Made by a program: the position numbers and the translations under genes. From positions 118,529,593-118,593,592 of the forward strand of contig NC_090378.1 of NCBI RefSeq assembly GCF_036365525.1: DNA of 64,000 bases, given 5' to 3'. This DNA comes from Heterodontus francisci. Taxonomy: Eukaryota. Of this stretch, positions 1 to 41,066 are shown one piece after another; positions within the stretch are counted from its first letter, which is position 1, and the number at the start of each line of letters is the position of its first letter. The notes beneath the pieces are model-generated. The model was not told where the DNA came from. It was given only the letters and a program-made list of their open reading frames with translations, and searched no databases.

Positions 1-3000
1 ATTATATATTATATATAACTGTGGGTTGTGTCAGTAGAGGAGGTGGGACTGTGAGTCCATTATTATATATAATATATAATTGTGGGATGTGTCAGTGCAG
101 GAGGTGGGACTGTGTGTCCAATATTATATATTATATATAACTGTGGGATGTGTCAGTGCGGGAGGTGGGACTGTGTGTCCATTATTATATATTATATATA
201 ACTGTGGAACGTGTCAGTGTGGGAGGTGGGACTATGCGTCCATTATTATATATTATATATAACTGTGGAAAGTGTCAGTCGAGGAGGTGGGACTGTGTGT
301 CCATTATTATATATTATATATAACTGTGGGATGTGTCAGTGCGGGAGGTGGGACTGTGTGTCCATTATTATATATTATATATAACTGTGGGATGTGTCAG
401 TACAGGAGGTGGGACTGTGTGTCCAATATTATGTCTTATATATAACTGTGGAACGTGTCAGTGTGGGAGGTGGGACTATGCGTCCATTATTATATATTAT
501 ATATAACTGTGGAAAGTGTCAGTCGAGGAGGTGGGACTGTGTGTCCATTATTATATATTATATATAACTGTGGGATGTGTCAGAGCGGGAGGTGGGACTG
601 TGTGTCCATTATTATATATTATATATAACTGTGGGATGTGTCAGTACAGGAGGTGGGACTGTGTGTCCAATATTATGTCTTATATATAACTGTGGGACGT
701 GTCAGTCCAGGAGGTGGGACTGTGTGTCCATTATTATATATTAGATATAACTGTGGGATGTGTCAGTACAGGAGGTGGGACTGTGTGTCCATTATTATAT
801 ATTAAATATAACTGTGGGATGTGTCAGTACAGGAGGTGGGACTGTGTGCCCATTATTATATATTATATATAACTGTGGGATGTGTCAGTGCGGGAGGTGG
901 GACTGTGTGTCCATGAACATATATTATATATAACTGTGGGATGTGTCAGTACAGGACGTGGGACTGTGAGCCCATTATTATATATTCTAGATAACAGTGG
1001 GATGTGTCAGTACAGGGGGTGGGACTGTGTGTCCATTATTATATATTATATATAACTGTGGGATGTGTCAGTGCAGGAGGTGGGACTGTGTGTCCATTAT
1101 TATATATTATATATAACTGAGGGATGTGTCAGGACAGGAGGTGGGACTGTGTGTCGATTATAATATATTATATACAACTGTGGGATGTGTCAGTACAGGA
1201 GGTGCGACTGTGTGTCCATTATTATTATTATATATAACTGTGGGATATGTCAGTGCAGGAGGTGGGACTGTATGTCGATTATTATATATTATATATAACT
1301 GTGGGATGTGTCAGAGCGGGAGGTGGGATTTTGTGTCCATTATTATATATAATATATAAATGTGGGATGTGTCAGTGCAGGAGGTGGGACTGTGTGTCCA
1401 TTATTATCTATTATATATAACTGTGGGATGTGTCAGTGCGGGAGGTGGGACTGTGTGTCCATTATTATATATTATATATAACTGTGGGTTGTCTCAGTAG
1501 AGGAGGTGGGACTGTGAGTCCATTATTATATATAATATATAATTGTGGGATGTGTCAGTGCAGGAGGTGGCACTGTGTGTCCAATATTATATATTATATA
1601 TAACTGTGGGTTGTGTCAGTAGAGGAGGTGGGACTGTGAGTCCATTATTATATATAATATATAATTGTGGGATGTGTCAGTGCGGGAGGTGGGACTGTGT
1701 ATCCAATATTATATATTATGTATAACTGTGGGATGTGTCAGTGCAGGAGGTGGGACTGTGTGTCCAATATTATATATTATGTATAACTGTGGGTTGTGTC
1801 AGTAGAGGAGGTGGGACTGTGAGTCCATTATTATATATAATATATAATTGTGGGATGTGTCAGTGCAGGAGGTGGGACTGTGTGTCCAATATTAAATATT
1901 ATATATAACTGTGGGATGTGTCAGTGCGGGAGGTGGGACTGTGTGTCCATTATTATATGTTATATATAACTGTGGAACGTGTCAGTGTGGGAGGTGGGAC
2001 TATGCGTCCATTATTATATATTATATATAACTGTGGAAAGTGTCAGTCGAGGAGGTGGGACTGTGTGTCCATTATTATATATTATATATAACTGTGGGAT
2101 GTGTCAGTGCGGGAGGTGGGACTGTGTGTCCATTATTATATATTATATATAACTGTGGGATGTGTCAGTCCAGGAGGTGGGACTGTGTGTCCATTATTAT
2201 ATATTATATATAACTGTCGAACATGTCAGTCGAGGAGGTGGGACTGTGCGTCCAATATTATATATTATATATAACTGTGGGATGTGTCAGTGCGGGAGGT
2301 GGGACTGTGTGTCCATTATTATATATCATATATAAATGTGGGATGTGTCAGTACAGGAGGTGGGACTGTGTGTCCATTATTATATATTATATATAACTGT
2401 GGGATGTGTCAGTGCAGGAGGTGGGACTGTGTGTCCATTATTATATATTATATATAACTGTCGGATGTGTCAGTGCGGGAGGTGGGACTGTGTGTCCATT
2501 ATTATATATTCTAGATAACTGTCGGATGTGTCAGTACAGGAGGTGGGACTGTGTGTCCATTATTATATATCATATATAAATGTGGGATGTGTCAGTACAG
2601 GAGGTGGGACTGTGTGTCCATTATTATATATTATATATAACTGTGGGATGTGTCAGTGCAGGAGGTGGGACTGTGTGTCCATTATTATATATTATATATA
2701 ACTGTCGGATGTGTCAGTGCGGGAGGTGGGACTGTGTGTCCATTATTATATATTCTAGATAACTGTCGGATGTGTCAGTACAGGAGGTGGGACTGTGTGT
2801 CCAATATTATGTCTTATATATAACTGTGGGATGTGTCAGTGCGGGAGGTGGGACTGTGTGTCCATGAACATATATTATATATAACTGTGGGATGTGTCAG
2901 TACAGGACTTGGGACTGTGAGCCCATTATTATATATTCTAGATAACAGTGGGATCTGTCAGGACAGGAGGTGGGGCTGTGTGTCCAATATTATATATTAT

Positions 3001-6000
3001 ATATAACTGTCGGATGTGTCATAATGGGAGGTGGGACTGTGTTTCCAATATTATATATTATATATAACTGTGGAACGTGTCAGTCGAGGAGGTGGGACTG
3101 TGCGTCCATTATTATATATTATATATAACTGTGGGATGTGTCAGTGCGGGAGGTGGGACTGTGTGTCCATTATTATATATTATATATAACTGTGGAACGT
3201 GTCAGTCGAGGAGGTGGTACTGTGCGTCCATTATTATATATTATATGTAACTGTGGGATGTGTCAGTGCGGGAGGTGGGACTGTCTGTCCATTATTATAT
3301 ATTATATATAACTGTGGAACGTGTCAGTCGAGGAGGTGGCACGGTGCGTCCATTATTATATATTATATATAACTGTGGGATGTGTCAGTGCAGGAGGTGG
3401 GACTGTGTGTCCATTATTATATATTATATATAACTGTGGAACGTGTCAGTCGAGGAGGTGGGACTGTGCGTCCATTATTAGATATTATATATAACTGTGG
3501 GATGTGTCAGTGCGGGAGGTGGGACTGTGTGTCCATTACTATATATTATATATAACTGTGGAACGTGTAAATCAAGGAGGTGGGACTGTGTCTCCATTAT
3601 TATATATTATATATAACTGTGGAAGGTGTCAGTCGAGGAGGTGGGACTGTGCGTCCCTTATTATATATTATATATAACTGTGGAAAGTGTCAGTCGAGGA
3701 GGTGGGACTGTGTGTCCATTATTATATATTATATATAACTGTCGGATGTGTCATAATGGGAGGTGGGACTGTGTTTCCAATATTATATATTATATATAAC
3801 TGTGGAACGTGTCAGTCGAGGAGGTGGGACTGTGCGTCCATTATTATATATTATATATAACTGTGGGATGTGTCAGTGCGGGAGGTGGGACTGTGTGTCC
3901 ATTATTATATATTATATATAACTGTGGAACGTGTCAGTCGAGGAGGTGGTACTGTGCGTCCATTATTATATATTATATGTAACTGTGGGATGTGTCAGTG
4001 CGGGAGGTGGGACTGTCTGTCCATTATTATATATTATATATAACTGTGGAACGTGTCAGTCGAGGAGGTGGCACGGTGCGTCCATTATTATATATTATAT
4101 ATAACTGTGGGATGTGTCAGTGCAGGAGGTGGGACTGTGTGTCCATTATTATATATTATATATAACTGTGGAACGTGTCAGTCGAGGAGGTGGGACTGTG
4201 CGTCCATTATTAGATATTATATATAACTGTGGGATGTGTCAGTGCGGGAGGTGGGACTGTGTGTCCATTACTATATATTATATATAACTGTGGAACGTGT
4301 AAATCCTGGAGGTGGGACTGTGTCTCCATTATTATATATTATATATAACTGTGGAAGGTGTCAGTCGAGGAGGTGGGACTGTGCGTCCCTTATTATATAT
4401 TATATATAACTGTGGAAAGTGTCAGTCGAGGAGGTGGGACTGTGTGTCCATTATTATATATTATATATAACTGTGGGATGTGTCAGTGCGGGAGGTGGGA
4501 CTGTGTGTCCATTATTATATGTTATATATAACTGTGGGATGTGTCAGTACAGGAGGTGGGACTGTGTGTCCATTATTATATATTATATATAACTGTGGAA
4601 CGTGTCAGTCGAGGAGGTGGGACTGTGCGTCCATTATTATATATTATATATAACTGTGGGATGTGTCAGTGCGGGAGGTGGGACTGTGTGTCCATTATTA
4701 TATATTATATATAACTGTCGGATGTGTCAGTGCAGGAGGTGGGACTGTGTGTCCATTATTATATATTATATATAACTGTGGAACGTGTCAGTCGAGGAGG
4801 TGGGACTGTGCGTCCATTATTATATATTATATATAACTGTGGGATGTGTCAGTGCGGGAGGTGGGACTGTGTGTCCATTATTATATATTATATATAACTG
4901 TCGGATGTGTCAGTGCAGGAGGTGGGACTATGTGTCCATTATTATATATTCTAGATAACTGTCGGATGTGTCAGTACAGGAGGTGGGACTGTGTGTCCAA
5001 TATTATGTCTTATATATAACTGTGGGATGTGTCAGTACAGGACGTGGGACTGTGAGCCCATTATTATATATTCTAGATAACAGTGGGATCTGTCAGGACA
5101 GGAGGTGGTGCTGTGTGTCCAATATTATATATTATATATAACTGTCGGATGTGTCAGTACAGGAGGTGGGACAGTGTGTCCAATATTATGTCTTATATAT
5201 CACTGTGGGACGTGTCAGTCCAGGAGGTGGGACTGTGTGTCCATTATTATATATTAGATATAACTGTGGGATGTGTCAGTACAGGAGGTGGGACTGTGTG
5301 TCCATTATTATATATTAAATATAACTGTGGGATGTGTCAGTACAGGAGGTGGGACTGTGTGTCCATTATTATATATTATATATAAATGTGGGATGTGTCA
5401 GTGCAGGAGGTGGGACTGTGTGTCCATTATTATATATTATATATAACTGTGGGATGTGTCAGTGCGGGAGGTGGGACTGTGTGTCCATGAACATATATTA
5501 TATATAACTGTGGGATGTGTCAGTACAGGACGTGGGACTGTGAGCCCATTATTATATATTCTAGATAACAGTGGGATGTGTCAGTACAGGGGGTGGGACT
5601 GTGTGTCCATTATTATATATTATATATAACTGTGGGATGTGTCAGTGCAGGAGGTGGGACTGTGTGTCCATTATTATATATTATATATAACTGAGGGATG
5701 TGTCAGGACAGGAGGTGGGACTGTGTGTCCATTATTATATATTATATATAACTGTGGGATGTGTCAGTGCGGGAGGTGGGACTGTGTGTCGATTATAATA
5801 TATTATATACAACTGTGGGATGTGTCAGTACAGGAGGTGGGACTGTGTGTCCATTATTATATATTATATATAACTGAGGGATGTGTCAGTACAGGAGGTG
5901 CGACTGTGTGTCCATTATTATTATTATATATAACTGTGGGATGTGTCTGTGCAGGAGGTGGGACTGTGTGTCCATTATTATATATTATATATAACTGTGG

Positions 6001-9000
6001 GATGTGTCAGAGCGGGAGGTGGCATTTTGTGTCCATTATTATATATAATATATAAATGTGGGATGTGTCAGTGCAGGAGGTGGGACTGTCTGTCCATTAT
6101 TATATATTATATATAACTGTGGGATGTGTCAGTGCGGGAGGTGGGACTGTGTGTCCATTATTATATATTATATATAACTGTGGGATGTGTCAGTGCGGGA
6201 GGTGGGACTGTGTGTCCATTATTATATATTATATATAACTGTGGGTTGTGTCAGTAGAGGAGGTTGGACTGTGAGTCCATTATTATATATAATATATAAT
6301 TGTGGGATGTGTCAGTGCAGGAGGTGGGACTGTGTGTCCATTCTTATCTATTATATATAACTGTGGGATGTGTCAGTGCGGGAGGTGGGACTGTGTGTCC
6401 ATTATTATATATTATATATAACTGTGGGATGTGTCAGTGCGGGAGGTGGGACTGTGTGTCCATTATTATATATTATATATAACTGTGGGTTGTGTCAGTA
6501 GAGGAGGTGGGACTGTGAGTCCATTATTATATATAATATATAATTGTGGGATGTGTCAGTGCGGGAGGTGGGACTGTGTGTCCATTATTATATATTATAT
6601 ATAACTGTGGGTTGTGTCAGTAGAGGAGGTGGGACTGTGAGTCCATTATTATATATAATATATAATTGTGGGATGTGTCAGTGCGGGAGGTGGGACTGTG
6701 TATCCAATATTATATATTATGTATAACTGTGGGATGTGTCAGTGCAGGAGGTGGGACTGTGTGTCCAATATTATATATTATGTATAACTGTGGGTTGTGT
6801 CAGCAGAGGAGGTGGGACTGTGAGTCCATTATTATATATAATATATAACTGTGGAACGTGTCAGTGTGGGAGGTGGGACTATGCGTCCATTATTATATAT
6901 TATATATAACTGTGGAAAGTGTCAGTCGAGGAGGTGGGACTGTGTGTCCATTATTATATATTATATATAATTGTGGGATGTGTCAGTGCGGGAGGTGGGA
7001 CTGTGTATCCATTATTATATATTATATATAACTGTCGAACGTGTCAGTCGAGGAGGTGGGGCTGTGCGTCCAATATTATATATTATATATAACTGTGGGA
7101 TGCGTCAGTGCGGGAGGTGGGACTGTGTGTCCATTATTATATATCATATATAAATGTGGGATGTGTCAGTGCAGGAGGTGGGACTGTGTGTCCATTATTA
7201 TATATTATATATAACTGTCGGATGTGTCAGTGCGGGAGGTGGGACTGTGTGTCCATTATTATATATTCTAGATAACTGTCGGATGTGTCAGTACAGGAGG
7301 TGGGACTGTGTGTCCAATATTATGTCTTATACATCACTGTGGGATGTGTCAGTGCGGGAGGTGGGACTGTGTGTCCATGAACATATATTATATATAACTG
7401 TGGGATGTGTCAGTACAGGACTTGGGACTGTGAGCCCATTATTATATATTCTAGGTAACTGTGGGATCTGTCAGGACAGGAGGTGGGGCTGTGTGTCCAA
7501 TATTATATATTATATATAACTGTCGGATGTGTCAGTACAGGAGGTGGGACTGTGTGTCCAATATTATGTCTTATATATAACTGTGGGACGTGTCAGTCCA
7601 GGAGGTGGGACTGTGTGTCCATTATTATATATTAGATATAACTGTGGGATGTGTCAGTACAGGAGGTGGGACTGTGTGTCCATTATTATATATTATATAT
7701 AACTGTTGAATGTGTCAGTACAGGAGGTGGGACTGTGTGTCCATTATTATATATTATATATAAATGTGGGATGTGTCAGTGCAGGAGGTGGGACTGTGTG
7801 TCCATTATTATATATTATATATAACTGTGGGATGTGTCAGTACAGGACGTGGGACTGTGAGCCCATTATTATATATTCTAGATAACAGTGGGATGTGTCA
7901 GTACAGGGGGTGGGACTGTGTGTCCATTATTATATATTATATATAACTGTGGGATGTGTCAGTGCAGGAGGTGGGACTGTGTGTCCATTATTATATATTA
8001 TATATAACTGAGGGATGTGTCAGGACAGGAGGTGGGACTGTGTGTCCATTATTATATATTATATATAACTGTGGGATGTGTCAGTGCGGGAGGTGGGACT
8101 GTGTGTCGATTATAATATATTATATACAACTGTGGGATGTGTCAGTACAGGAGGTGGGACTGTGTGTCGATTATTATATATTATATATAACTGTGGGATG
8201 TGTCAGTGCGGGAGGTGGGACTGTGTGTCCATTATTATATATTATATATAAATGTGGGATGTGTCAGAGCAGGAGGTGGGACTGTGTGTCCATTATTATC
8301 TATTATATATAACTGTGGGATGTGTCAGTGCGGGAGGTGGGACTGTGAGTCCATTATTATATATAATATATAATTGTGGGATGTGTCAGTGCAGGAGGTG
8401 GGACTGTGTGTCCAATATTATATATTATATATAACTGTGGGATGTGTCAGTGCGGGAGGTGGGACTGTGTGTCCAATATTATATATTATATATAACTGTG
8501 GGTTGTGTCAGTAGAGGAGGTGGGACTGTGAGTCCATTATTATATATAATATATAACTGTGGGATGTGTCAGTGCGGGAGGTGGGACTGTGTGTCCAATA
8601 TTATATATTATGTATAACTGTGGGTTGTGTCAGTAGAGGAGGTGGGACTGTGAGTCCATTATTATATATAATATATAATTGTGGGATGTGTCAGTGCAGG
8701 AGGTGGGACTGTGTGTCCAATATTATATATTATGTATAACTGTGGGATGTGTCAGTGCAGGAGGTGGGACTGTGTATCCATTATTATATATTATATATAA
8801 CTGTGGGATGTGTCAGTGCAGGAGGTGGGACTGTGTGTCCAATATTATATATTATGTATAACTGTGGGTTGTGTCAGTAGAGGAGGTGGGACTGTGTGTC
8901 CAATATTATATATTATGTATAACTGTGGGATGTGTCAGTGCAGGAGGTGGGACTGTGTGTCCAATATTATATATTATATATAACTGTGGGATGTGTCAGT

Positions 9001-12000
9001 GCGGGAGGTGGGACTGTGTGTCCATTATTATATATCATATATATAACTGTGGGATGTGTCAGTGCGGGAGGTGGGACTGTGTGTCCATTATTATATATTA
9101 TATATAACTGTGGGTTGTGTCAGTAGAGGAGGTGGGACTGTGTGTCCATTATTATATATTATATATAACTGTGGGATGTGTCAGTACAGGAGGTGGAACT
9201 GTTGTCCATTATTATATTTTATATATAAAGCTGTGGAACGTGTCAGTGCAGGAGGTGGAACCATGTGTCCATTATTATATATCAAATATAACTGTGGAAC
9301 GTGTCAGTCGAGGAGGTGGGACTGTGTGTCCATTATTATATAATATATATAACTGTCGGTTGTGTCAGTACAGGAGGTGGGAATGTGTGTTTATTATTAC
9401 ATATTATATATAACTGTGGGACGTGTCAGTACAGGAGGTGGGACTGTGTGTCCATTATAATATTATATATAACTGTGGGATGTGTCAGTACAGGAGGTGG
9501 GACTGTGTGTCTATTATTATATATTATATATAACTGTGGGATGTGTCAGTACAGGAGGTGGGACTGTGTGTCTATTATTATATATTATATATAATTGTGG
9601 GATATGTCAGTACAGGAGGTGGGACTGTGTGTCCATTATTGTAGATTATATATAACTGTGAGATGTGTCAGTACAGAAGGTGGGACTGTGTGTCCATTAT
9701 TATATATTATATATAACTGTGGGATGTGTCAGTACAGGAGGTGGGACTGTGTGTCCATTATTATATATTATATATAACTGTGGGATGTGTCAGTACAGGA
9801 GGTGGGACTCTGTGTCTATTATTGTATATGTTATATAACTGTGAGATGTGTCAGTACAGAAGGTGGGACTGTGTGTCCATTATTATATATTATATATAAC
9901 TGTGGGATGTGTCAGTACAGGAGGTGGGACTGTGTGTCTATTATTGTATATGATATATAACTGTGAGATGTGTCAGTACAGAAGGTAGGACTGTGTGTCC
10001 ATTATTATATATGATATATAACTGTGAGATGTGTCAGTACAGGAGGTGGGACTGTGTATCCATTATTATATATTATATATAACTGTGGGATGTGTCAGTG
10101 CAGGAGGTGGGACTGTGTGTCCAATATTATATATTATATATAACTGTGGGATGTGTCAGTGCGGGAGGTAGGACTGTGTGTCCAATATTATATATTATAT
10201 ATAACTGTGGGTTGTGTCAGAAGAGGAGGTGGGACTGTGAGTCCATTATTATATATAATATATAATTGTGGGATGTGTCAGTGCGGGAGGTGGGACTGTG
10301 TGTCCATTATTATATATTATATATAACTGTGGGTTGTGTCAGTAGAGGAGGTGGGACTGTGAGTCCAATATTATATATTATGTATAACTGTGGGTTGTGT
10401 CAGTAGAGGAGGTGGGACTGTGAGTCCATTATTATATATAATATATAATTGTGGGATGTGTCAGTGCGGGAGGTGGGACTGTGTATCCAATATTATATAT
10501 TATGTATAACTGTGGGATGTGTCAGTGCAGGAGGTGGGACTGTGTGTCCAATATTATATATTATGTATAACTGTGGGTTGTGTCAGTAGAGGAGGTGGGA
10601 CTGTGAGTCCATTATTATATATAATATATAATTGTGGGATGTGTCAGTGCAGGAGGTGGGACTGTGTGTCCATTATTATATATTATATATAACTGTGGAA
10701 CGTGTCAGTGTGGGAGGTGGGACTATACGTCCATTATTATATATTATATATAACTGTGGAAAGTGTCAGTCGAGGAGGTGGGACTGTGTGTCCATTATTA
10801 TATATTATATATAACTGTGGGATGTGTCAGTGCGGGAGGTGGGACTGTGTGTCCATTATTATATATTATATATAACTGTGGGATGTGTCAGTCCAGGAGG
10901 TGGGACTGTGTGTCCATTATTATATATTATATATAACTGTGGGATGTGTCAGTGCGGGAGGTGGGACTGTGTGTCCATTATTATATATTATATATAACTG
11001 TGGGATGTGTCAGTGCAGGAGGTGGGACTGTGTGTCCAATATTATATATTATATATAACTGTGGGATGTGTCAGTGCGGGAGGTGGGACTGTGTGTCCAT
11101 TATTATATATTATATATAACTGTGGAACGTGTCAGTGTGGGAGGTGGGACTATGCGTCCATTATTATATATTATATATAACTGTGGAAAGTGTCAGTCGA
11201 GGAGGTGGGACTGTGTGTCCATTATTATATATTATATATAACTGTGGGATGTGTCAGTGCGGGAGGTGGGACTGTGTGTCCATTATTATATATTATATAT
11301 AACTGTGGGATGTGTCAGTCCAGGAGGTGGGACTGTGTGTCCATTATTATATATTATATATAACTGTCGAACGTGTCAGTCGAGGAGGTGGGACTGTGCG
11401 TCCAATATTATATATTATATATAACTGTGGGATGTGTCAGTGCGGGAGGTGGGACTGTGTGTCCATTATTATATATCATATATAAATGTGGGATGTGTCA
11501 GTACAGGAGGTGGGACTGTGTGTCCATTATTATATATTATATATAACTGTGGGATGTGTCAGTGCAGGAGGTGGGACTGTGTGTCCATTATTATATATTA
11601 TATATAACTGTCGGATGTGTCAGTGCGGGAGGTGGGACTGTGTGTCCATTATTATATATTCTAGATAACTGTCGGATGTGTCAGTACAGGAGGTGGGACT
11701 GTGTGTCCATTATTATATATCATATATAAATGTGGGATGTGTCAGTACAGGAGGTGGGACTGTGTGTCCATTATTATATATTATATATAACTGTGGGATG
11801 TGTCAGTGCAGGAGGTGGGACTGTGTGTCCATTATTATATATTATATATAACTGTCGGATGTGTCAGTGCGGGAGGTGGGACTGTGTGTCCATTATTATA
11901 TATTCTAGATAACTGTCGGATGTGTCAGTACAGGAGGTGGGACTGTGTGTCCAATATTATGTCTTATATATAACTGTGGGATGTGTCAGTGCGGGAGGTG

Positions 12001-18000: not shown

Positions 18001-21000
18001 TTATATATAACTGTGGGATGTGTCAGTGCGGGAGGTGGGACTGTGTGTCCATTATTATATATTATATATAACTGTGGGTTGTGTCAGTAGAGGAGGTGGG
18101 ACTGTGAGTCCATTATTACATATAATATATAATTGTGGGATGTGTCAGTGCAGGAGGTGGAACTGTTGTCCATTATTATATTTTATATATAAAGCTGTGG
18201 AACGTGTCAATGCAGGAGGTGGAACCATGTGTCCATTATTATATATCAAATATAACTGTGGAACGTGTCAGTCGAGGAGGTGGGACTGTGTGTCCATTAT
18301 TATATAATATATATAACTGTCGGTTGTGTCAGTACGGGAGGTGGGAATGTGTGTTTATTATTACATATTATATATAACTGTGGGACGTGTCAGTACAGGA
18401 GGTGGGACTGTGTGTCCATTGTAATATTATATATAACTGTGGGATGTGTCAGTACAGGAGGTGGGACTGTGTGTCTATTATTATATATTATATATAATTG
18501 TGGGATATGTCAGTACAGGAGGTGGGACTGTGTGCCCATTATTGTAGATTATATATAACTGTGAGATGTGTCAGTACAGAAGGTGGGACTGTGTGTCCAT
18601 TATTATATATTATATATAACTGTGGGATGTGTCAGTACAGGAGGTGGGACTGTGTGTCCATTATTATATATTACATATAACTGTGGGATGTGTCAGTACA
18701 GGAGGTGGGACTGTGTGTCTATTATTGTATATGTTATATAACTGTGAGATGTGTCAGTACAGAAGGTGGGACTGTGTGTCCATTATTATATATTATATAT
18801 AACTGTGGGATGTGTCAGTACAGGAGGTGGGACTGTGTGTCTATTATTGTATATGATATATAACTGTGAGATGTGTCAGTACAGAAGGTAGGACTGTGTG
18901 TCCATTATTATATATGATATATAACTGTGAGATGTGTCAGTACAGGAGGTGGGACTGTGTATCCATTATTATATATTATATATAACTGTGGGATATCTCA
19001 GTATAGGAGGTGGGACTGTGTGTCCATAATTATATATTATATATAACTGTGCGATATGTCAGTGCAGGAGGTGGGACTGTGTGTCCATAATTATATATTA
19101 TATATAACTGTGGGACGTGTCAGTGCAGGAGGTGGGACTGTGTGTCCATAATTATATATTATGTATAACTGTGGGTTGTGTCAGTAGAGGAGGTGGGACT
19201 GTGAGTCCATTATTATATATAATATATAATTGTGGGATGTGTCAGTGCAGGAGGTGGGACTGTGTGTCCAATATTATATATTATGTATAACTGTGGGTTG
19301 TGTCAGTAGAGGAGGTGGGACTGTGTGTCCAATATTATATATTATGTATAACTGTGGGATGTGTCAGTGCAGGAGGTGGGACTGTGTGTCCAATATTATG
19401 TATTATATATAACTGTGGGATGTGTCAGTGCGGGAGGTGGGACTGTGTGTCCATTATTATATATTATATATAACTGTGGGATGTGTCAGTGCGGGAGCTG
19501 GGACTGTGTGTCCATTATTATATATTATATATAACTGTGGGTTGTGTCAGTGGAGGAGGTGGGACTGTGAGTCCATTATTATATATTCTATATAATTGTG
19601 GGATGTGTCAGTGCAGGAGGTGGGACTGTTGTCCATTATTATATTTTATATATAAAGCTGTGGAACGTGTCAGTGCAGGAGGTGGAACCATGTGTCCATT
19701 ATTATATATCAAATATAACTGTGGAACGTGTCAGTCGAGGAGGTGGGACTGTGTGTCCATTATTATATAATATATATAACTGTCGGTTGTGTCAGTACAG
19801 GAGGTGGGAATGTGTGTTTATTATTACATATTATATATAACTGTGGGACGTGTCAGTACAGGAGGTGGGACTGTGTGTCCATTAGAATATTATATATAAC
19901 TGTGGGATGTGTCAGTACAGGAGGTGGGACTGTGTGTCCATTATTATATATTATATATAACTGTGGGATGTGTCAGTACAGGAGGTGGGACTGTGTGTCT
20001 ATTATTATATATTATATATAATTGTGGGATATGTCAGTACAGGAGGTGGGACTGTGTGTCCATTATTGTAGATTATATATAACTGTGAGATGTGTCAGTA
20101 CAGAAGGTGGGACTGTGTGTCCATTATTATATATTATATATAACTGTGGGATGTGTCAGTACAGGAGGTGGGACTGTGTGTCCATTATTATATATTATAT
20201 ATAACTGTGGGATGTGTCAGTACAGGAGGTGGGACTGTGTGTCTATTATTGTATATGTTATATAACTGTGAGATGTGTCAGTACAGAAGGTGGGACTGTG
20301 TGTCCATTATTATATATTATATATAACTGTGGGATGTGTCAGTACAGGAGGTGGGACTGTGTGTCTATTATTGTATATGATATATAACTGTGAGATGTGT
20401 CAGTACAGAAGGTAGGACTGTGTGTCCATTATTATATATGATATATAACTGTGAGATGTGTCAGTACAGGAGGTGGGACTGTGTATCCATTATTATATAT
20501 TATATATAACTGTGGGATATCTCAGTATAGGAGGTGGGACTGTGTGTCCATAATTATATCTTATATATAACTGTGGGATCTGTCAGTGCAGGAGGTGGGA
20601 CTGTGTGTCCATAATTATATATTATATATAACTGTGGGACGTGTCAGTGCAGGAGGTGGGACTGTGTGTCCATAATTATATATTATATATAACTGTGGGA
20701 CGTGTCAGTACAGGAGGTGGGACTGTGTATCCATTATTATATATTATATATAACTGTGGGATATGTCAGTATAGGAGGTGGGACTGTGTGTCCATTATTA
20801 TATATTATATATAACTGAGGGATGTTTCAGTACAGGAGGTGGGACTGTGTGTCCATTATTATATATTACATATAACTGTGGGATGTGTCAGTACAGGAGC
20901 TGGGACTGTGTGTTCATTATTATAGATTATATATAACTGTGGGATGTCTCAGTGCAGGAGGTGGGACTGTGTGTCCAATATGATATATTATATATAACTG

Positions 21001-24000
21001 TGGGATGTGTCAGTGCAGGAGGTGGGACTGTGTGTCCATTATTATATATTATATATAACTGTGGGATGTGTCAGTACAGTAGGTGGGACTGTGAGTCAAT
21101 TATTATATATCATATATAACTGTGGGATGTGTCAGTGCGGGAGGTGGGACTGTGTGTCTATTATTATATATTATATATAACTGTCGGTTGTGTCAGTACA
21201 GGCGGTGGGACTGTGTGTCCATTATAATATTATTTATAACTGTGGGACGTGTCAGTACAGGAGGTGGGACTGTGTGTCCATTATTATATATTATATATAA
21301 ATGTGGAATATGTCAGTATCGGAGGTGGGACTGTGTGTCCATTATTGTATATGACATATGACTGTGAGATGTGTCAGTACAGGAGGTGGGACTCTGTGTC
21401 CATTATTATATATTATATATAACTGTGGGATGTGTCAGTACAGGAGGTGGGACTGTGTGTCCATGATAAGATTATATATAACTGTGGGATGTGTCAGTAC
21501 AGGAGGTGGGACTGTTTGTCCATTATTATATATTATATATAATTGTGGGATATGTCAGTACAGGAGGTGGGACTGTGTGTCCATTATTATATATTATATA
21601 TAACTGTGTGATGTGTCAGTACAGGAGGTGGGACTGTGTGCCCATTATTATATATTATATATAACTGTGGAACGTGTCAGTCGAGGAGGTGGGACTGTGT
21701 GTCCATTAATATATATTATAGAGAACAGTGGGATGTGTCAGTACAGGAGGTGGGACTGTGTGTCCAATATTATATATTATATATAACTGTGGGATGTGTC
21801 AGTGCAGGTGGTGGGACCGTGTGTCCATTATTATATATTGTATATAACTGTGGGATGTGTCAGTAGAGGAGGTGGGACTGTGTGTCCATTATTATATATT
21901 ATATGTAACTGTGGGATGTGTCAGTGCGGGAGGTGGGACTGTGTGTCCAATATTATATATTACATATAACTGTGGGATGTGTCAGTGCGGGAGGTGGGAC
22001 CATGTGTCCATTATTATCTATTATATATAACTGTGGGATGTGTCAGTGCGGGAGGTGGGACCATGTGTCCATTATTATATATAATATATAACTGTGGGTT
22101 GTGTCAGTAGAGGAGGTGGGACTGTGAGTCCATTATTATATATTATATATAACTGTGGGATGTGTCAGTGCAGGAGGTGGCAATGTGTGTCCCTTATTAT
22201 ATATTATATACAACTGTGGGATGTGTCAGTGCGGGAGGTGGGACTGTTGTCCATTATTATATATTATATATAACTGTGGGATGTGTCAGTACAGGAGCTG
22301 GGACTGTCTGTCCATTATTATATATCATATATAACTGTGTGATGTGGCAGTACAGGAGGTGGGACGGTGTGTCCATAATTATATATTATATATAACTGTG
22401 GGACGTGTCAGTACAGGAGGTGGGACTGTGTATCCATTATTATATATTATATATAACTGTGGGATGTGTCAGTGCAGGAGGTGGGACTGTGTCTCCATTA
22501 TTATATATTATATATAACTGTGGGATGTGTCAGTGCGGGAGGTGGGACTGTGTGTCCATTATTATATATTATATATAACTGTGGGATGTGTCAGTACAGG
22601 AGGTGGGACTGTGTGTTCATTCTGATATATTATATATAACTGTGGGACGTGTCAGTGCAGGGCTTGGGACTGTGTATCCATTATTATATATTATATATAA
22701 CTGTGGGATGTGTCAGTACAGGAGGTGGGACTGTGTGTCCATTATTATATATTATATATAACTGTGGGACGTGTCAGTGCAGGGGTTGGGACTGTGTATC
22801 CATTATTATATATTATATATAACTGTGGGATGTGTCAGTACAGGAGGTGGGACTGTGTGTCCATTATTATATATTAAATATAACTGTGGGACGTGTCAGT
22901 GCAGGGGTTGGGACTGTGTATCCATTATTATATATTATATATAACTGTGGGATGTGTCAGTACAGGAGGTGGGACTGTGTATCCATTATTATATATTATA
23001 TATAACTGTGGGATGTGTCAGTGCAGGAGGTGGGACTGTGTCTCCATTATTATATATTATATATAACTGTGGGATGCGTCAGTGCGGGAGGTGGGACTGT
23101 GTGTCCATTATTATATATTATATATAACTGTGGGATGTGTCAGTGCGGGAGGTGGGACTGTGTGTCCATTATTATATATTATATATAACTGTGGGATGTG
23201 TCAGTACAGGAGGTGGGACTGTGTATCCATTATTATATATTATATATAACTGTGGGATGTGTCAGTACAGGAGGTGGGACTGTGTGTCCATTATTATATA
23301 TTAAATATAACTGTGGGATGTGTCAGTACAGGAGGTGGGACTGTGTGTCCATTATTATATATTAAATATAACTGTGGGACGTGTCAGTGCAGGGGTTGGG
23401 ACTGTGTATCCATTATTATATATTATATATAACTGTGGGATGTGTCAGTACAGGAGGTGGGACTGTGTATCCATTATTATATATTATATATAACTGTGGG
23501 ATGTGTCAGTGCAGGAGGTGGGACTGTGTCTCCATTATTATATATTATATATAACTGTGGGATGTGTCAGTGCAGAAGGTGGGACTGTGTCTCCATTATT
23601 ATATATTATATATAACTGTGGGATGTGTCAGTACAGGAGGTGGGACTGTGTGTTCATTATGATATATTATATATAACTGTGGGACGTGTCAGTGCAGGGC
23701 TTGGGACTGTGTATCCATTATTATATATTATATATAACTGTGGGATGTGTCAGTACAGGAGGTGGGACTGTGTGTCCATTATTATATATTATATATAACT
23801 GTGGGACGTGTCAGTGCAGGGGTTGGGACTGTGTGTTCATTATTATATATTATATATAACTGTGGGACGTGTCAGTGCAGGGGTTGGGACTGTGTATCCA
23901 TTATTATATATTATATATAACTGTGGGACGTGTCAGTGCAGGGGTTGGGACTGTGTGTTCATTATTATATATTATATATAACTGTGGGCCGTGTCAGTAC

Positions 24001-27000
24001 AGGAGGTGGGAATGTGTGTCCATTATTATATATTATATATAACTGTGGGATGCGTCAGGACAGGAGGTGGGACTGTGTGTTCATTATTATATATTATATA
24101 TAACTGTGGGCCGTGTCAGTACAGGAGGTGGGACTGTGTGTCCATTATTATATATTATATATAACTGTGGGATGCGTCAGTATAGGAGGTGGGACTGTGC
24201 GTCCATTATTATATATTATATATAACTGTGGGATGCGTCAGTACAGGAGGTGGGACTGTGTGTTCATTATTATATATTATATATAACTGTGGGCCGTGTC
24301 AGTACAGGAGGTGGGACTGTGTATCCATTATTATATATTATATATAACTGTGGGCCGTGTCAGTGCTGGAGGTGGGACTGTGTGTCCATTATTATATATT
24401 ATATATAACTGTGGGCCGTGTCAGTACAGGAGGTGGGACTGTGTATCCATTATTATATATTATATATAACTGTGGGATGTGTCAGTACAGGAGGTGGGAC
24501 TGTGTGTCCATTATTATATATTATATATAACTGTGGGCCGTGTCAGTGCTGGAGGTGGGACTGTGTGTCCATTATTATATATTATATATAACTGTGGGAT
24601 GCGTCAGTACAGGAGGTGGGACTGTGTGTCCATTATTATATATTGTATATAACTGTGGGATGCGTCAGTACAGGAGGTGGGACTGTGTGTCCATTATTAT
24701 ATATTATATATAACTGTGGGATGCGTCAGTACAGGAGGTGGGACTGTGTGTCCATTATTATATATTATATATAACTGTGGGATGTGTCAGTACAGGAGGT
24801 GGGACTGTGTGTCCATTATTATATATTATATATAACAGTGGGACATGTCAGTACAGGAGGTGGGACTGTGTGTCCATTATTATATATTATATATAACTGT
24901 GGGATGCGTCAGTACAGGAGGTGGGACTGTGTGTCCATTATTATATATTATATAGAACTGTGGGATGCGTCAGTACAGGAGGTGGGACTGTGTGTTCATT
25001 ATTATATATTATATATAACTGTGGGATGTGTTAGTACAGGAGGTGGGACTGTGTGTCCATTATTATATATTATATATAACTGTGGGATGCGTCAGTACAG
25101 GAGGTGGGACTGTGTATCCATTATTATATATTATATATAACTGTGGGATGTGTCAGTACAGGAGGTGGGACTGTGTGTCCATTATTATATATTATATATA
25201 ACTGTGGGCCGTGTCAGTGCTGGAGGTGGGACTGTGTGTCCATTATTATATATTATATATAAATGTGGGATGCGTCAGTACAGGAGGTGGGACTGTGTGT
25301 CCATTATTATATATTGTATATAACTGTGGGATGCGTCAGTACAGGAGGTGGGACTGTGTGTCCATTATTATATATTGTATATAACTGTGGGATGCGTCAG
25401 TACAGGAGGTGGGACTGTGTGTCCATTATTATATATTATATATAACTGTGGGATGCGTCAGTACAGGAGGTGGGACTGTGTGTCCATTATTATATATTAT
25501 ATATAACTGTGGGATGCGTCAGTACAGGAGGTGGGACTGTGTGTTCATTATTATATATTATATATAACTGTGGGATGTGTCAGTACAGGAGGTGGGACTG
25601 TGTGTCCATTATTATATATTATATATAACTGTGGGATGTGTCAGTGCAGGAGGTGGGACTGTGTGTCCATTATTATATATTATATATAACTGTGGGATGC
25701 GTCAGTACAGGAGGTGGGACTGTGTATCCATTATTATATATTATATATAACTGTGGGATGTGTCAGTACAGGAGGTGGGACTGTGTGTCCATTATTATAT
25801 ATTATATATAACTGTGGGCCGTGTCAGTGCTGGAGGTGGGACTGTGTGTCCATTATTATATATTATATATAACTGTGGGATGCGTCAGTACAGGAGGTGG
25901 GACTGTGTGTCCATTATTATATATTGTATATAACTGTGGGATGCGTCAGTACAGGAGGTGGGACTGTGTGTCCATTATTATATATTGTATATAACTGTGG
26001 GATGCGTCAGTACAGGAGGTGGGACTGTGTGTCCATTATTATATATTGTATATAACTGTGGGCCGTGTCAGTGCACGAGGTGGGACTGTGTGTCCATTAT
26101 TATATATTGTATATAACTGTGGGATGCGTCAGTACAGGAGGTGGGACTGTGTGTCCATTATTATATATTATATATAACTGTGGGATGCGTCAGTACAGGA
26201 GGTGGGACTGTGTGTCCATTATTATATATTATATATAACTGTGGGATGCGTCAGTACAGGAGGTGGGACTGTGTGTTCATTATTATATATTATATATAAC
26301 TGTGGGATGTGTCAGTACAGGAGGTGGGACTGTGTGTCCATTATTATATATTATATATAACTGTGGGATGTGTCAGTGCAGGAGGTGGGACTGTGTGTCC
26401 ATTATTATATATTATATATAACTGTGGGATGCGTCAGTACAGGAGGTGGGACTGTGTATCCATTATTATATATTATATATAACTGTGGGATGTGTCAGTA
26501 CAGGAGGTGGGACTGTGTGTCCATTATTATATATTATATATAACTGTGGGCCGTGTCAGTGCTGGAGGTGGGACTGTGTGTCCATTATTATATATTATAT
26601 ATAACTGTGGGATGCGTCAGTACAGGAGGTGGGACTGTGTGTCCATTATTATATATTGTATATAACTGTGGGATGCGTCAGTACAGGAGGTGGGACTGTG
26701 TGTCCATTATTATATATTGTATATAACTGTGGGATGCGTCAGTACAGGAGGTGGGACTGTGTGTCCATTATTATATATTGTATATAACTGTGGGCCGTGT
26801 CAGTGCAGGAGGTGGGACTGTGTCTCCATTATTATATATTATATATAACTGTGGGATGTGTCAGTACAGGAGGTGGGACTGTGTATCCATTATTATATAT
26901 TATATATAACTGTGGGATGTGTCAGTGCAGGAGGTGGGACTGTGTCTCCATTATTATATATTATATATAACTGTGGGATGTGTCAGTGCAGAAGGTGGGA

Positions 27001-30000
27001 CTGTGTCTCCATTATTATATATTATATATAACTGTGGGATGTGTCAGTACAGGAGGTGGGACTGTGTGTTCATTATGATATATTATATATAACTGTGGGA
27101 CGTGTCAGTGCAGGGCTTGGGACTGTGTATCCATTATTATATATTATATATAACTGTGGGATGTGTCAGTACAGGAGGTGGGACTGTGTGTCCATTATTA
27201 TATATTATATATAACTGTGGGACGTGTCAGTGCAGGGGTTGGGACTGTGTGTTCATTATTATATATTATATATAACTGTGGGACGTGTCAGTGCAGGGGT
27301 TGGGACTGTGTATCCATTATTATATATTATATATAACTGTGGGACGTGTCAGTGCAGGGGTTGGGACTGTGTGTTCATTATTATATATTATATATAACTG
27401 TGGGCCGTGTCAGTACAGGAGGTGGGAATGTGTGTCCATTATTATATATTATATATAACTGTGGGATGCGTCAGGACAGGAGGTGGGACTGTGTGTTCAT
27501 TATTATATATTATATATAACTGTGGGCCGTGTCAGTACAGGAGGTGGGACTGTGTGTCCATTATTATATATTATATATAACTGTGGGATGCGTCAGTATA
27601 GGAGGTGGGACTGTGCGTCCATTATTATATATTATATATAACTGTGGGATGCGTCAGTACAGGAGGTGGGACTGTGTGTTCATTATTATATATTATATAT
27701 AACTGTGGGCCGTGTCAGTACAGGAGGTGGGACTGTGTATCCATTATTATATATTATATATAACTGTGGGCCGTGTCAGTGCTGGAGGTGGGACTGTGTG
27801 TCCATTATTATATATTATATATAACTGTGGGCCGTGTCAGTACAGGAGGTGGGACTGTGTATCCATTATTATATATTATATATAACTGTGGGATGTGTCA
27901 GTACAGGAGGTGGGACTGTGTGTCCATTATTATATATTATATATAACTGTGGGCCGTGTCAGTGCTGGAGGTGGGACTGTGTGTCCATTATTATATATTA
28001 TATATAACTGTGGGATGCGTCAGTACAGGAGGTGGGACTGTGTGTCCATTATTATATATTGTATATAACTGTGGGATGCGTCAGTACAGGAGGTGGGACT
28101 GTGTGTCCATTATTATATATTATATATAACTGTGGGATGCGTCAGTACAGGAGGTGGGACTGTGTGTCCATTATTATATATTATATATAACTGTGGGATG
28201 TGTCAGTACAGGAGGTGGGACTGTGTGTCCATTATTATATATTATATATAACAGTGGGACATGTCAGTACAGGAGGTGGGACTGTGTGTCCATTATTATA
28301 TATTATATATAACTGTGGGATGCGTCAGTACAGGAGGTGGGACTGTGTGTCCATTATTATATATTATATAGAACTGTGGGATGCGTCAGTACAGGAGGTG
28401 GGACTGTGTGTTCATTATTATATATTATATATAACTGTGGGATGTGTTAGTACAGGAGGTGGGACTGTGTGTCCATTATTATATATTATATATAACTGTG
28501 GGATGCGTCAGTACAGGAGGTGGGACTGTGTATCCATTATTATATATTATATATAACTGTGGGATGTGTCAGTACAGGAGGTGGGACTGTGTGTCCATTA
28601 TTATATATTATATATAACTGTGGGCCGTGTCAGTGCTGGAGGTGGGACTGTGTGTCCATTATTATATATTATATATAAATGTGGGATGCGTCAGTACAGG
28701 AGGTGGGACTGTGTGTCCATTATTATATATTGTATATAACTGTGGGATGCGTCAGTACAGGAGGTGGGACTGTGTGTCCATTATTATATATTGTATATAA
28801 CTGTGGGATGCGTCAGTACAGGAGGTGGGACTGTGTGTCCATTATTATATATTATATATAACTGTGGGATGCGTCAGTACAGGAGGTGGGACTGTGTGTC
28901 CATTATTATATATTATATATAACTGTGGGATGCGTCAGTACAGGAGGTGGGACTGTGTGTTCATTATTATATATTATATATAACTGTGGGATGTGTCAGT
29001 ACAGGAGGTGGGACTGTGTGTCCATTATTATATATTATATATAACTGTGGGATGTGTCAGTGCAGGAGGTGGGACTGTGTGTCCATTATTATATATTATA
29101 TATAACTGTGGGATGCGTCAGTACAGGAGGTGGGACTGTGTATCCATTATTATATATTATATATAACTGTGGGATGTGTCAGTACAGGAGGTGGGACTGT
29201 GTGTCCATTATTATATATTATATATAACTGTGGGCCGTGTCAGTGCTGGAGGTGGGACTGTGTGTCCATTATTATATATTATATATAACTGTGGGATGCG
29301 TCAGTACAGGAGGTGGGACTGTGTGTCCATTATTATATATTGTATATAACTGTGGGATGCGTCAGTACAGGAGGTGGGACTGTGTGTCCATTATTATATA
29401 TTGTATATAACTGTGGGATGCGTCAGTACAGGAGGTGGGACTGTGTGTCCATTATTATATATTGTATATAACTGTGGGCCGTGTCAGTGCACGAGGTGGG
29501 ACTGTGTGTCCATTATTATATATTGTATATAACTGTGGGATGCGTCAGTACAGGAGGTGGGACTGTGTGTCCATTATTATATATTATATATAACTGTGGG
29601 ATGCGTCAGTACAGGAGGTGGGACTGTGTGTCCATTATTATATATTATATATAACTGTGGGATGCGTCAGTACAGGAGGTGGGACTGTGTGTTCATTATT
29701 ATATATTATATATAACTGTGGGATGTGTCAGTACAGGAGGTGGGACTGTGTGTCCATTATTATATATTATATATAACTGTGGGATGTGTCAGTGCAGGAG
29801 GTGGGACTGTGTGTCCATTATTATATATTATATATAACTGTGGGATGCGTCAGTACAGGAGGTGGGACTGTGTATCCATTATTATATATTATATATAACT
29901 GTGGGATGTGTCAGTACAGGAGGTGGGACTGTGTGTCCATTATTATATATTATATATAACTGTGGGCCGTGTCAGTGCTGGAGGTGGGACTGTGTGTCCA

Positions 30001-32437
30001 TTATTATATATTATATATAACTGTGGGATGCGTCAGTACAGGAGGTGGGACTGTGTGTCCATTATTATATATTGTATATAACTGTGGGATGCGTCAGTAC
30101 AGGAGGTGGGACTGTGTGTCCATTATTATATATTGTATATAACTGTGGGATGCGTCAGTACAGGAGGTGGGACTGTGTGTCCATTATTATATATTGTATA
30201 TAACTGTGGGCCGTGTCAGTGCAGGAGGTGGGACTGTGTGTCCATTATTATATATTATATATAACTGTGGGATGCGTCAGTACAGGAGGTGGGACTGTGT
30301 GTCCATTATTATATATTGTATATAACTGTGGAATGCGTCAGTACAGGAGGTGGGACTGTGTGTCCATTATTATATATTGTATATAACTGTGGGATGCGTC
30401 AGTACAGGAGGTGGGACTGTGTGTCCATTATTATATATTGTATATAACTGTGGGATGCGTCAGTACAGGAGGTGGGACTGTGTGTCCATTATTATATATT
30501 GTATATAACTGTGGGATGCGTCAGTACAGGAGGTGGGACTGTGTGTCCATTATTATATATTGTATATAACTGTGGCATGCGTCAGTACAGGAGGTGGGAC
30601 TGTGAGTCCATTATTATATATTGTATATAACTGTGGGATGCGTCAGTACAGGAGGTGGGACTGTGTGTCCATTATTATATATTATATATAACTGTGGGAT
30701 GCGTCAGTACAGGAGGTGGGACTGTGTGTCCATTATTATATATTATATATAACTGTGGGATGCGTCAGTACAGGAGGTGGGACTGTGTGTCCATTATTAT
30801 ATATTATATCTAACTGTGGGCCGTGTCAGTGCTGGAGGTGGGACTGTGTGTCCATTATTATATATTATATATAACTGTGGGATGTGTCAGTACAGGAGGT
30901 GGGACTGTGTGTCCATTATTATATATTATATATTACTGTGGGATGCGTCAGTACAGGAGGTGGGACTGTGTGTCCATTATTATATATTATATATAACTGT
31001 GGGATGCGTCAGTACAGGAGGTGGGACTGTGTGTCCATTATTATATATTATATATAACTGTGGGATGTGTCAGTGCGGGAGGTGGGACTGTGTGTCCATT
31101 ATTATATATTATATATAACTGTGGGATGTGTCAGTACAGGAGGTGGGACTGTGTGTTCATTATGATATATTATATATAACTGTGGGACATGTCAGTGCAG
31201 GGCTTGGGACTGTGTATCCATTATTATATATTATATATAACTGTGGGACGTGTCAGTGCAGGGGTTGGGACTGTGTGTTCATTATTATATATTATATATA
31301 ACTGTGGGCCGTGTCAGTACAGGAGGTGGGACTGTGTGTCCATTATTATTTATTATATATAACTGTGGGATGCGTCAGTACAGGAGGTGGGACTGTGTTT
31401 CCATTATTATATATTATATATAACTGTGGGATGCGTCAGTACAGGAGGTGGGACTGTGTGTTCATTATTATATATTATATATAACTGTGGGCCATGTCAG
31501 TACAGGAGGTGGGACTGTGTGTCCATTATTATATATTATATATAACTGTGGGATGCGTCAGTATAGGAGGTGGGACTGTGCGTCCATTATTATATATTAT
31601 ATATAACTGTGGGATGTGTCAGTACAGGAGGTGGGACTGTGTGTTCATTATTATATATTATATATAACTGTGGGCCATGTCAGTACATGAGGTGGGACTG
31701 TGTGTCCATTATTATATATTATATATAACTGTGGGATGCGTCAGTATAGGAGGTGGGACTGTGCGTCCATTATTATATATTATATATAACTGTGGGATGC
31801 GTCAGTACAGGAGGTGGGACTGTGTATCCATTATTATATATTATATATAACTGTGGGCCGTGTCAGTGCTGGAGGTGGGACTGTGTGTCCATTATTATAT
31901 ATTATATATAACTGTGGGCCGTGTCAGTGCTGGAGGTGGGACTGTGTGTTCATTATTATATATTATATATAACTGTGGGATGTGTCAGTACAGGAGGTGG
32001 GACTGTGTGTCTATTATTATATATTATATATAACTGTGGGATGTGTCAGTACAGGAGGTGGGACTGTGTATCCATTATTATATATTATATATAACTGTGG
32101 GATGTGTCAGTACAGGAGGTGGGACTGTGTGTCTATTATTATATATTATATATAACTGTGGGATGTGTCAGTACAGGAGGTGGGACTGTGTATCCATTAT
32201 TATATATTATATATAACTGTGGGATGTGTCAGTACAGGAGGTGGGACTGTGTGTCCATTATTTTATATTATATATAACTGTGGGATGTGTCAGTACAGGA
32301 GGTGGGTCTGTGTGTCCATTATTTTATATTATATATAACTGTGGGATGTGTCAGTACAGGAGGTGGGTCTGTGTGTCCATTATTTTATATTATATATAAC
32401 TGTGGGATGTGTCAGTACAGGAGGTGGGACTGTGTGT
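1..32437. repeat. 61-bp tandem satellite, at least 530 copies, open at the left window edge; consensus aactgtgggatgtgtcagtRcRggaggtgggactgtgtgtccattattatatattatatat
   Basis: Continuous 61-bp periodicity from position 1 to 32437, with a 42-bp GT-rich part and a 19-bp AT-only part. All ORFs here are frame permutations of the unit. Confidence 0.99.
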
Positions 32438-32442
32438 ATTGA

Positions 32443-32470
32443 GGTTTTTGTACGGCTCTGTCTCACTGTG
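32443..32470 (-). other. Recombination signal sequence, 12-bp spacer (12-RSS), of the V segment
   Basis: Minus strand reads CACAGTG (32470-32464), 12-bp spacer AGACAGAGCCGT, ACAAAAACC (32451-32443). Heptamer and nonamer are both perfect consensus and abut the V coding end. Confidence 0.98.
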
Positions 32471-32779
32471 TACCAGCTGTCTGCCAGCTGTAAGTTTGCT
32501 GACAGTAATAATCTGCGACATCCTCATTCTGTACATTACTGATTGTCAGAGTGAATTTGGTGTTCTGTTGACTGCCGGTGAATCGTTCGGATATTCCTGT
32601 GTATCGAGTTGTTGCATAATAGATCAGGAGAGTGGGTTTCTGACCGTCTCGCTGCTGATACCAAGCTACATAACTGCCTACGGACTGGCTGGCCGTACAG
32701 GTGATCGTTGCGGTCTGTCCCAGTGTCACTGACAGTGCCGGTGGAGACTGGGTCATGATGATGGTGTCTCCACTGATAC
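32471..32779 (-). CDS. IGKV: Immunoglobulin light-chain V exon, kappa-type (cartilaginous-fish type III, NS4-like), unrearranged
   Basis: Open frame (G)[102 protein letters not shown] with the conserved Cys, WYQQ and DYYC motifs. Acceptor ttacccctcag ends at 32780. A 12-RSS on V is the kappa-type configuration. Confidence 0.95.
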
Positions 32780-32965
32780 CTGAGGGGTAATAGAGAAACA
32801 GAGTGAAGTAAGAACTGTCACAGAAAGACCCTGTAAAATGAGATATTATTAGAGACAGTGACCGCTCCTCTTGTTTCATCATTTTCTCTCCAATCACAAG
32901 TCAGTAGAATTGGACTGAAACAAACAGCAGGAAAATATTAACCGTGGAAGGAGAGAGATTTGTAC

Positions 32966-33014
32966 CTGCGACGCACAATGCCAGAGGCCAGATCAGCTGG
33001 ATGGGTGAAATCAT
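32966..33014 (-). CDS. IGKV: Ig leader exon (L-PART1), MISPIQLIWPLALCVA-G
   Basis: ATG at 33014-33012, 16 largely hydrophobic codons plus G, then a GT donor at 32965. The phase-1 intron of 186 bp splices in frame to the V exon. Confidence 0.93.
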
Positions 33015-33074
33015 GGTGCCTGCTCCTGTCTCTGTGCCTGGTTACTGATAAACTCTCCCTTCACTGGGCTCTGC

Positions 33075-33128
33075 TTTATAAAGCTGCAGCCTGTGAGAGT
33101 CTGACTGCCTGTTTCTCAGTATGTAAAT
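33075..33128 (-). promoter_or_regulatory. Ig light-chain V promoter: variant octamer and TATA box
   Basis: TTTATAAA at 33075-33082, about 60 bp upstream of the ATG. ATTTACAT (minus strand, 33128-33121) is one mismatch from the light-chain octamer ATTTGCAT, at the expected position and orientation. Confidence 0.75.
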
Positions 33129-33159
33129 GGTATCACCCAGAGAAAGGCACGTCAGCAAC

Positions 33160-33815
33160 TCTCACTTCCTCTTCTCTCTTTCTGTTTCCCTCACTACCTC
33201 CCTCCTTCTATTTCTCACCCCCTCTCTCTCTGCCTCTTTATCTCCTATCTCAATCCCTTTCCCTCTTTTGCCCTCTCCCTCTCACTCACTGTCTCTCTCT
33301 CCCCCACCCTCCTGAAATCTTTCTCACTCCCCTTCCCTCATTCTCCTTGTCTCTCTCTCCATATCTCTTTCTCTCTTTTTCTGCTTCTCCCCATCCCTAC
33401 CTCTCACTCTTTGTCTCTCTGCCTGCTCTCTGTCCGCTCTCTCTCCCTCATTCTCTGTCTGTATCTCTCTCTGTCTGTGTCTTTGTCTTTCTGCCTACTC
33501 ATCTCTCTCTCCCTCACTCTTTGCCTGTCTCCCCATCTTGTTCTTCCAATCTCACTCTCCCTATTTTGCTCTCTCCTCCTCTCCCTGTCTCCCTGTCTCT
33601 GTCTCTCTCCCTCCCTATCTCTCTATCTCTCTGTCTTTGTTCCTCTGCCTACTCATCTCTCTCCCACCCTCCATTGTTCTGTAATTCTGTAACTGATCTC
33701 TAAAACAGGAGTTATTACTGGAGACTGGAACACTTTGAGGCCTGGTGCAGCAGTTAAATGTCTCCCTCTCTATCTCTCTCTGTCTCACAGCCTCCACCTC
33801 ACTCTCTCTTTCCCA
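33160..33815. repeat. Degenerate (CT)n polypyrimidine tract
   Basis: About 0.5 kb of almost pure C/T on the + strand directly upstream of the V promoter, with a shorter tract near 33760-33815. Confidence 0.9.
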
Positions 33816-41060: not shown

Positions 41061-41066
41061 ACATGT

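Follow-up and report, generated by a model that had tools for sequence, protein, structure and literature searches.

An intact kappa V gene of the horn shark Heterodontus francisci borders a 61-bp satellite array of at least 32 kb

Results

The V gene and its recombination signal

The 64,000-nucleotide stretch of the horn shark (Heterodontus francisci) genome analysed here (contig NC_090378.1, positions 118,529,593 to 118,593,592; hereafter the window) contains on its minus strand an intact variable (V) gene of the type III/NS4 immunoglobulin (Ig) kappa family, and the recombination signal sequence (RSS) of this gene opens onto a satellite array with a period of 61 bp. The original prediction, made from the sequence alone, had described a kappa-type V with intact leader, splice sites, reading frame and RSS, and each of these elements was confirmed. 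The V exon matched the Pfam V-set domain (1.9e-18), and its translation carries the conserved V-set residues Cys23, Trp41 and Cys104, with C27, W39 and C92 among the invariant columns. The RSS, CACAGTG-12-ACAAAAACC (32470-32443), showed no mismatch at 16 of 16 positions and is the sole such site in the window; a 12-bp spacer on the V side is the polarity of kappa genes. A motif scan identified an octamer variant, ATTTACAT, at 33128-33121 (114 nt 5' of the ATG) and TATAAA at 33080-33075 (66 nt 5' of the ATG), which together may form the promoter. A CT-rich low-complexity tract (33150-33700) lies directly upstream of these elements.

The top database relative was a Heterodontus francisci protein annotated as "immunoglobulin kappa light chain-like" (97% identity in the search, 94-96% in alignments), and tblastn with a horn-shark RefSeq kappa model gave 96% identity over 99 amino acids of the V exon. 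The next relatives were a horn-shark kappa cDNA and the kappa chains of basking shark, catshark, spiny dogfish, nurse shark and epaulette shark. Since the best matches are horn-shark kappa chains followed by those of other sharks, the gene is assigned to the type III/NS4 kappa V genes. The motif GSQQNTK, thought at the outset to be diagnostic of this V, proved to be a trait of the family, as it is present in XP_067894067 and nearly so in the horn-shark cDNA and a Squalus chain. The leader encodes Leu (TTG at 32978-32976) where the RefSeq models and the cDNA have Phe (TTC), and this codon is usable as a marker specific to the copy. The germline 3' end of the V is unusually long, its contribution to the third complementarity-determining region (CDR3) reading …TAC AGC TGG CAG ACA GCT GGT A (32490-32471, minus strand) with CAGCTGG occurring twice, and has the look of an insertion or duplication private to this copy.

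The 61-bp satellite array

The array had been predicted to begin 5 bp from the nonamer of the RSS and to run for at least 32 kb, and both points were confirmed with Tandem Repeats Finder (TRF) and by the sequence, which places the end of the array at 32437 and the start of the nonamer at 32443. TRF reported a single array at 1-32437 with a period of 61, 531.9 copies and 91% matches. Composition over the array is ~39% GC with a G-rich plus strand (GC skew of about +0.45) and shifts abruptly past position 32,000. The units were cut at a conserved 16-mer anchor, of which 519 occurrences were found. Successive anchors were 61 bp apart in 491 instances, 59-63 bp apart in 14 and 122 bp apart in 13, the last explained by one anchor too diverged to be recognized. 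Because only spacings of 59-63 or 122 bp occur, the 32.4 kb are purely satellite without a unique insert. The array is expected to extend past the left edge of the window and thus to exceed 32.4 kb.

Mean divergence is 5.3% between a unit and the consensus and ~9% between units, which have numerous private variants and small indels. The units nearest the V are the closest to the consensus, with 1-2 mismatches, which is the opposite of most satellite edges. Comparison of units revealed neither a higher-order repeat in the array nor a large duplication extending across it. The one internal duplication detected is the tandem 3416-bp block listed in Table 1, which reflects either a recent unequal exchange or a duplication introduced by the assembler.

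Resemblance of the satellite unit to a recombination signal

Read on the strand in the sense of the V, the consensus unit contains CACAGTT, 23 nt and ACACAGTCC. This signal-like element is oriented as the V RSS is and would be convergent with the RSS of a joining (J) segment expected at the far end of the array. A pseudo-J in the flank of the unit (T-G-G-G-T on the plus strand) was also considered; it is the view of the same cryptic signal from the other strand, points toward the V and is unlike the FGKGT J of the family, and was treated as coincidence.

Were the units functional, the RAG recombinase coming from J would meet hundreds of decoys before reaching the V, and rearrangement of the cluster would be lowered or gated, a proposal compatible with a satellite-filled V-J interval. 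The resemblance is widespread: in 354 of the ~530 units, and on the V-sense strand only, CAC is present, the heptamer carries no more than one mismatch, the spacing is 23 bp and the nonamer carries no more than three mismatches, the same criteria applied with a 12-bp spacer or to the other strand retrieved 0 units, CAC is kept in 473 of 517 units, and a scan for 23-bp-spacer signals (23-RSS) returned 7 matches at three or fewer mismatches in total versus 0.73 expected by chance. Yet the nonamer-like ACACAGTCC matches at only 6 of 9 positions and has a broken central A-tract, and only 2 units reach two or fewer mismatches versus ACAAAAACC. The 16 signal-like positions are also not better conserved than others, with a mean non-consensus frequency of 0.031 versus 0.053 over all shifts, which ranks 13 of 61 circular shifts, and by our estimate such a match would turn up in ~1-3% of random 61-mers. 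Furthermore, the loose ends of RNA contigs at the V end, among those listed, all lead into true J and none into satellite. The satellite resembles recombination signals without sign of selection or use, and a functional array of cryptic signals is considered very unlikely. The same low credence is given to the broader idea that the satellite supplies V-oriented cryptic signals in every horn-shark kappa cluster, with array length and unit quality setting the probability of productive joining for each; if that idea were true, decoy arrays would favour the expression of a single kappa cluster in a genome that has dozens of independent ones. The earlier suggestion that array length could tune or silence the cluster found no support here.

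Evidence from RNA and DNA contigs

The stretch comprising the satellite junction and the V was found in runs of organism A (4 DNA-like and 4 RNA-like, all from one sample), and a small part of it in several other organisms. Logan contigs of four runs (X1, X2, X9 and X10) were placed on 32316-33150 at 88% likeness or more, a threshold at which paralogous kappa genes map together, so that the results apply to the family before any single copy. Contig depth being an unreliable measure, the presence of contigs alone was relied upon, with no copy number derived. In the RNA run of organism A (X1), the summed depth was in the millions for the V exon, hundreds of thousands to ~1.2 million for the leader exon, ~105 for the intron and 87 upstream of the promoter-like elements, an excess of exon over intron greater than 10^4-fold. 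Joints in the X1 contigs skip 186 nt exactly at the borders of the leader intron, again at the level of the family. The contigs leave the reference at 32484-32487 and continue with ACGTTCGGTAAAGGAACCAAGCTC, which encodes TFGKGTKL on the V strand, the J sequence of the horn-shark cDNA and RefSeq models. The spliced joints and the continuation into TFGKGTKL indicate that genes of the kappa family rearrange to J and are strongly expressed.

The leader marker bears on the copy in the window. At 32976, ~8% of the RNA depth in X1 keeps the Leu letter and 92% has Phe, and Phe is present in all listed DNA contigs of X2, X9 and X10. The depth over 32471-32483 in X1 is a few percent of that over the body of the V, and the RSS is essentially uncovered. 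The rare letter in RNA, together with coverage that ends before the RSS, points, short of proof, to rearranged mRNA from this copy or a very small subfamily rather than to read-through germline transcripts.

Contigs from DNA were informative for the satellite. In the DNA run of organism A (X2), the depth of satellite contigs exceeds that of the V flank by a factor of thousands. The satellite is also present in the closely similar organism B (X9), at 88-99% likeness and with a depth roughly a thousandfold that of the V contigs of this organism, one of which is 98% alike and ends in …ACCCCTA followed by CACAG, representing a family member with an ordinary short CDR3 end. In organism C (X10), a shark, the leader, intron and V were found at 90% likeness with a 3-nt deletion typical of sharks other than Heterodontus, and the satellite is represented by a single 35-nt match only. 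The satellite is common to organisms A and B and is not a general shark repeat. Its depth in A and B is what would be expected of dozens of clusters with hundreds of units apiece. The contig of X10 with the 35-nt match has low depth; it matches the G-rich 35 nt of the unit at 32403-32437, preceded by TTTTTGT and 23 other letters (30 of 104 flanking letters seen), and could represent a single-copy progenitor of the repeat beside a nonamer-like motif.

Other features of the window

The 31 kb upstream of the V consist of minisatellites and decayed pieces of long interspersed nuclear element (LINE) and long terminal repeat (LTR) retroelements (Table 1), and no cellular gene was seen there. A LINE-like open reading frame (ORF) is placed as if inserted into a 36-mer array.

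Table 1. Coordinates of features within the 64,000-nucleotide window.
Feature	Position	Strand	Description and evidence
61-bp satellite	1-32437		~532 head-to-tail units; runs off the left end of the window; TRF, composition, anchor spacings
Tandem duplication within the array	23366-30331		3416-bp block (56 units) present twice, 23366-26915 and 26782-30331, 99.8% identical; self-blast, offset identity
Non-repeat junction, 5 bp	32442-32438	minus	ATTGA on the plus strand; satellite then begins
12-RSS nonamer ACAAAAACC	32451-32443	minus	consensus scan
12-RSS spacer, 12 bp	32463-32452	minus	
12-RSS heptamer CACAGTG	32470-32464	minus	consensus scan
V exon, kappa type III/NS4	32779-32471	minus	in frame, stop-free
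Leader intron	32965-32780	minus	186 nt, GT..AG
Leader exon	33014-32966	minus	ATG at 33014; encodes MISPIQLIWPLALCVA-G
Promoter-like elements	33075-33128	minus	motif scan; putative function
Minisatellite, period 43	34303-34546		
Decayed retroelement pieces	35600-41400, 52500-53000, 60860-62700		include reverse-transcriptase fragments
Minisatellite, period 32	41901-43155		
Minisatellite, period 23	43286-43798		
Minisatellite, period 36	44848-47497		
LINE-like ORF	47767-48834	minus	zf-RVT domain; between both 36-mer arrays
Minisatellite, period 36	48877-49179		
LTR-element integrase zinc-binding domain	60863-61501		adjoins gag-like ORF with zinc knuckle

Discussion

Light-chain genes of sharks are the textbook miniclusters, in which V, J and constant (C) segments lie within a few kb, a layout taken as ancestral and as needing no long-range V-J joining. 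The locus described here departs from the geometry of such a cluster, with at least 32.4 kb of satellite after the RSS instead of a J at ~0.5 kb. We consider it probable that the V belongs to one of many horn-shark kappa clusters and that expansion of its V-J interval has produced a macrosatellite of more than 32 kb that is excised by V-J joining, with J and C located beyond the left edge of the window. The interval of ~0.5 kb that separates the V 12-RSS from the J 23-RSS in the nurse shark would here have been replaced or swollen by the 61-bp macrosatellite. Past the left edge, the minus strand would be expected to carry GGTTTTTGT-23-CACTGTG, then the J (…TFGKGTKLRLS) and, further on, the C-kappa exon (…SQPTLTLMPPSPEEVKAKG…). 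In RAG-mediated joining the whole array would be lost as an excision product, with an ordinary VJ-C gene remaining, and the satellite would be tolerated as passenger DNA discarded in each B cell that uses the cluster. The array itself may turn over by unequal exchange, with the 99.8% identity of the 3.4-kb internal duplication pointing to ongoing turnover. We infer that J and C lie beyond the array, that the array is deleted on joining and that the repeat is a passenger; the V gene, for its part, is intact and belongs to a type that is expressed. Consistent with a working cluster, the promoter-like elements, splice sites and RSS are all intact.

Several results weigh against a swollen interval, and most of them are equally what an orphan V at the edge of a satellite block would show, that is, a V whose own J and C were lost or never present and which is unused or rarely joined to the J of another cluster. 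When five full-length shark kappa chains were searched against the 64 kb by tblastn (E of 10 or less), only the leader and V exon matched. No canonical CACAGTG-23-ACAAAAACC was found in the window, the scan returning just 3-mismatch sites within the satellite and a spurious overlap with the V RSS, and no [FW]GxG[TS] motif adjoining a heptamer is present in it. With the anchor spacings, these searches bear out the original report that the 32.4 kb after the V hold no J, canonical 23-RSS, C exon or unique sequence, and J and C are likewise missing from the 31 kb upstream. Joining by inversion to a J-C upstream of the V was rejected, as none lies within 33,100-64,000. No RefSeq V-J-C model is built on exactly this V, the two such models being other copies 94-95% identical to it. 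Most transcripts in X1 depart from the V 13-16 nt before its germline end and lack its atypical long 3' coding end, and the RNA evidence as a whole holds for the kappa family and is suggestive for this copy. Against an orphan stand the uninterrupted reading frame, the intact promoter-like elements, splice sites and consensus RSS, and the rare leader letter in RNA contigs that do not read through the RSS. An orphan V is judged unlikely. The original prediction had left open whether the interval was expanded or the V orphaned, and expansion is better supported by the expressed family, the intact elements, the V-J joining seen in the family and the rare letter in RNA; the J and C that expansion requires would lie outside the window. 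Joining of V to J in RNA, which the prediction had proposed to look for, was found as continuation of the family into TFGKGTKL and is suggestive for this copy from the ~8% of RNA depth with its leader letter.

An error of assembly would account for the same arrangement by a mis-join of V and satellite, or by over- or under-expansion of the array by the assembler. None of the DNA contigs listed (a few of ~15,900) bridges 32437/32443, which also counts against the expanded interval, and the 3.4-kb block duplicated at 99.8% identity could have come from the assembler. However, units that differ from one another by ~9% and carry private variants and small indels make an array that can be assembled from long accurate reads, the window is without N, and no loose end occurs at the border of RSS and satellite among the DNA contigs listed. 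Such an artefact is thought most improbable.

As an example of a satellite-filled kappa V-J interval the window is partial, and it is corroboration rather than key proof. If the expanded interval is real, a macrosatellite of tens of kb that is still joined across, in genes that are highly expressed, would mean that short V-J spacing is not required in sharks. The locus would also provide a natural system for investigating how RAG finds the partner signal across a repetitive interval, and would allow asking whether array length varies with usage between clusters or individuals. As a variant of the shark kappa minicluster layout, it is of interest to comparative immunologists.

Comparison with known systems

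The closest well-described counterpart is the split NS4 (kappa) genes of the nurse shark, which have a leader intron of 186 bp and a V-J interval of 502-524 bp (Lee et al. 2000, PMC2193156). The V of the horn-shark gene is 76-79% identical to the chains of nurse shark and bamboo shark, and the gene is further like NS4 in a split leader with a 186-nt intron, a 12-RSS on the V side, an octamer-type promoter, the FGKGTKL J to which its family is joined and one V per cluster. The short V-J baseline assumed for shark light chains by the original prediction agrees with the ~500 bp of these nurse-shark genes (PMC2193156), from which the present locus differs in having at least 32.4 kb of satellite after the RSS and no J within the window. 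Among horn-shark records, WKK30311.1, XP_067894067.1 and XP_067894095.1 are 88-95% identical over the V region, share the motif GSQQN(T/L)K and differ in the leader at one residue. The gene in the window is distinguished from them by the leader Leu for Phe, the sequence SVGSY in CDR1 and the longer germline CDR3 end (YSWQTAG), and none of the records is this gene.

Reviews describe all shark Ig light-chain genes as miniclusters (PMC5192425), as does a 2025 analysis of chromosome-level elasmobranch assemblies (PMC12227049). A satellite within the V-J interval of a shark was not described in any paper retrieved by a full-text literature search. In the Ig kappa locus of mammals, RAG acts across V-J distances of tens of kb to Mb, over an interval that contains regulatory elements and further V genes. 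The horn-shark cluster would resemble this translocon in having a V 12-RSS and a J 23-RSS tens of kb apart, with deletional joining removing the interval between them. It is unlike the mammalian locus in that the interval here would be one homogeneous satellite in a cluster of one V and one J.

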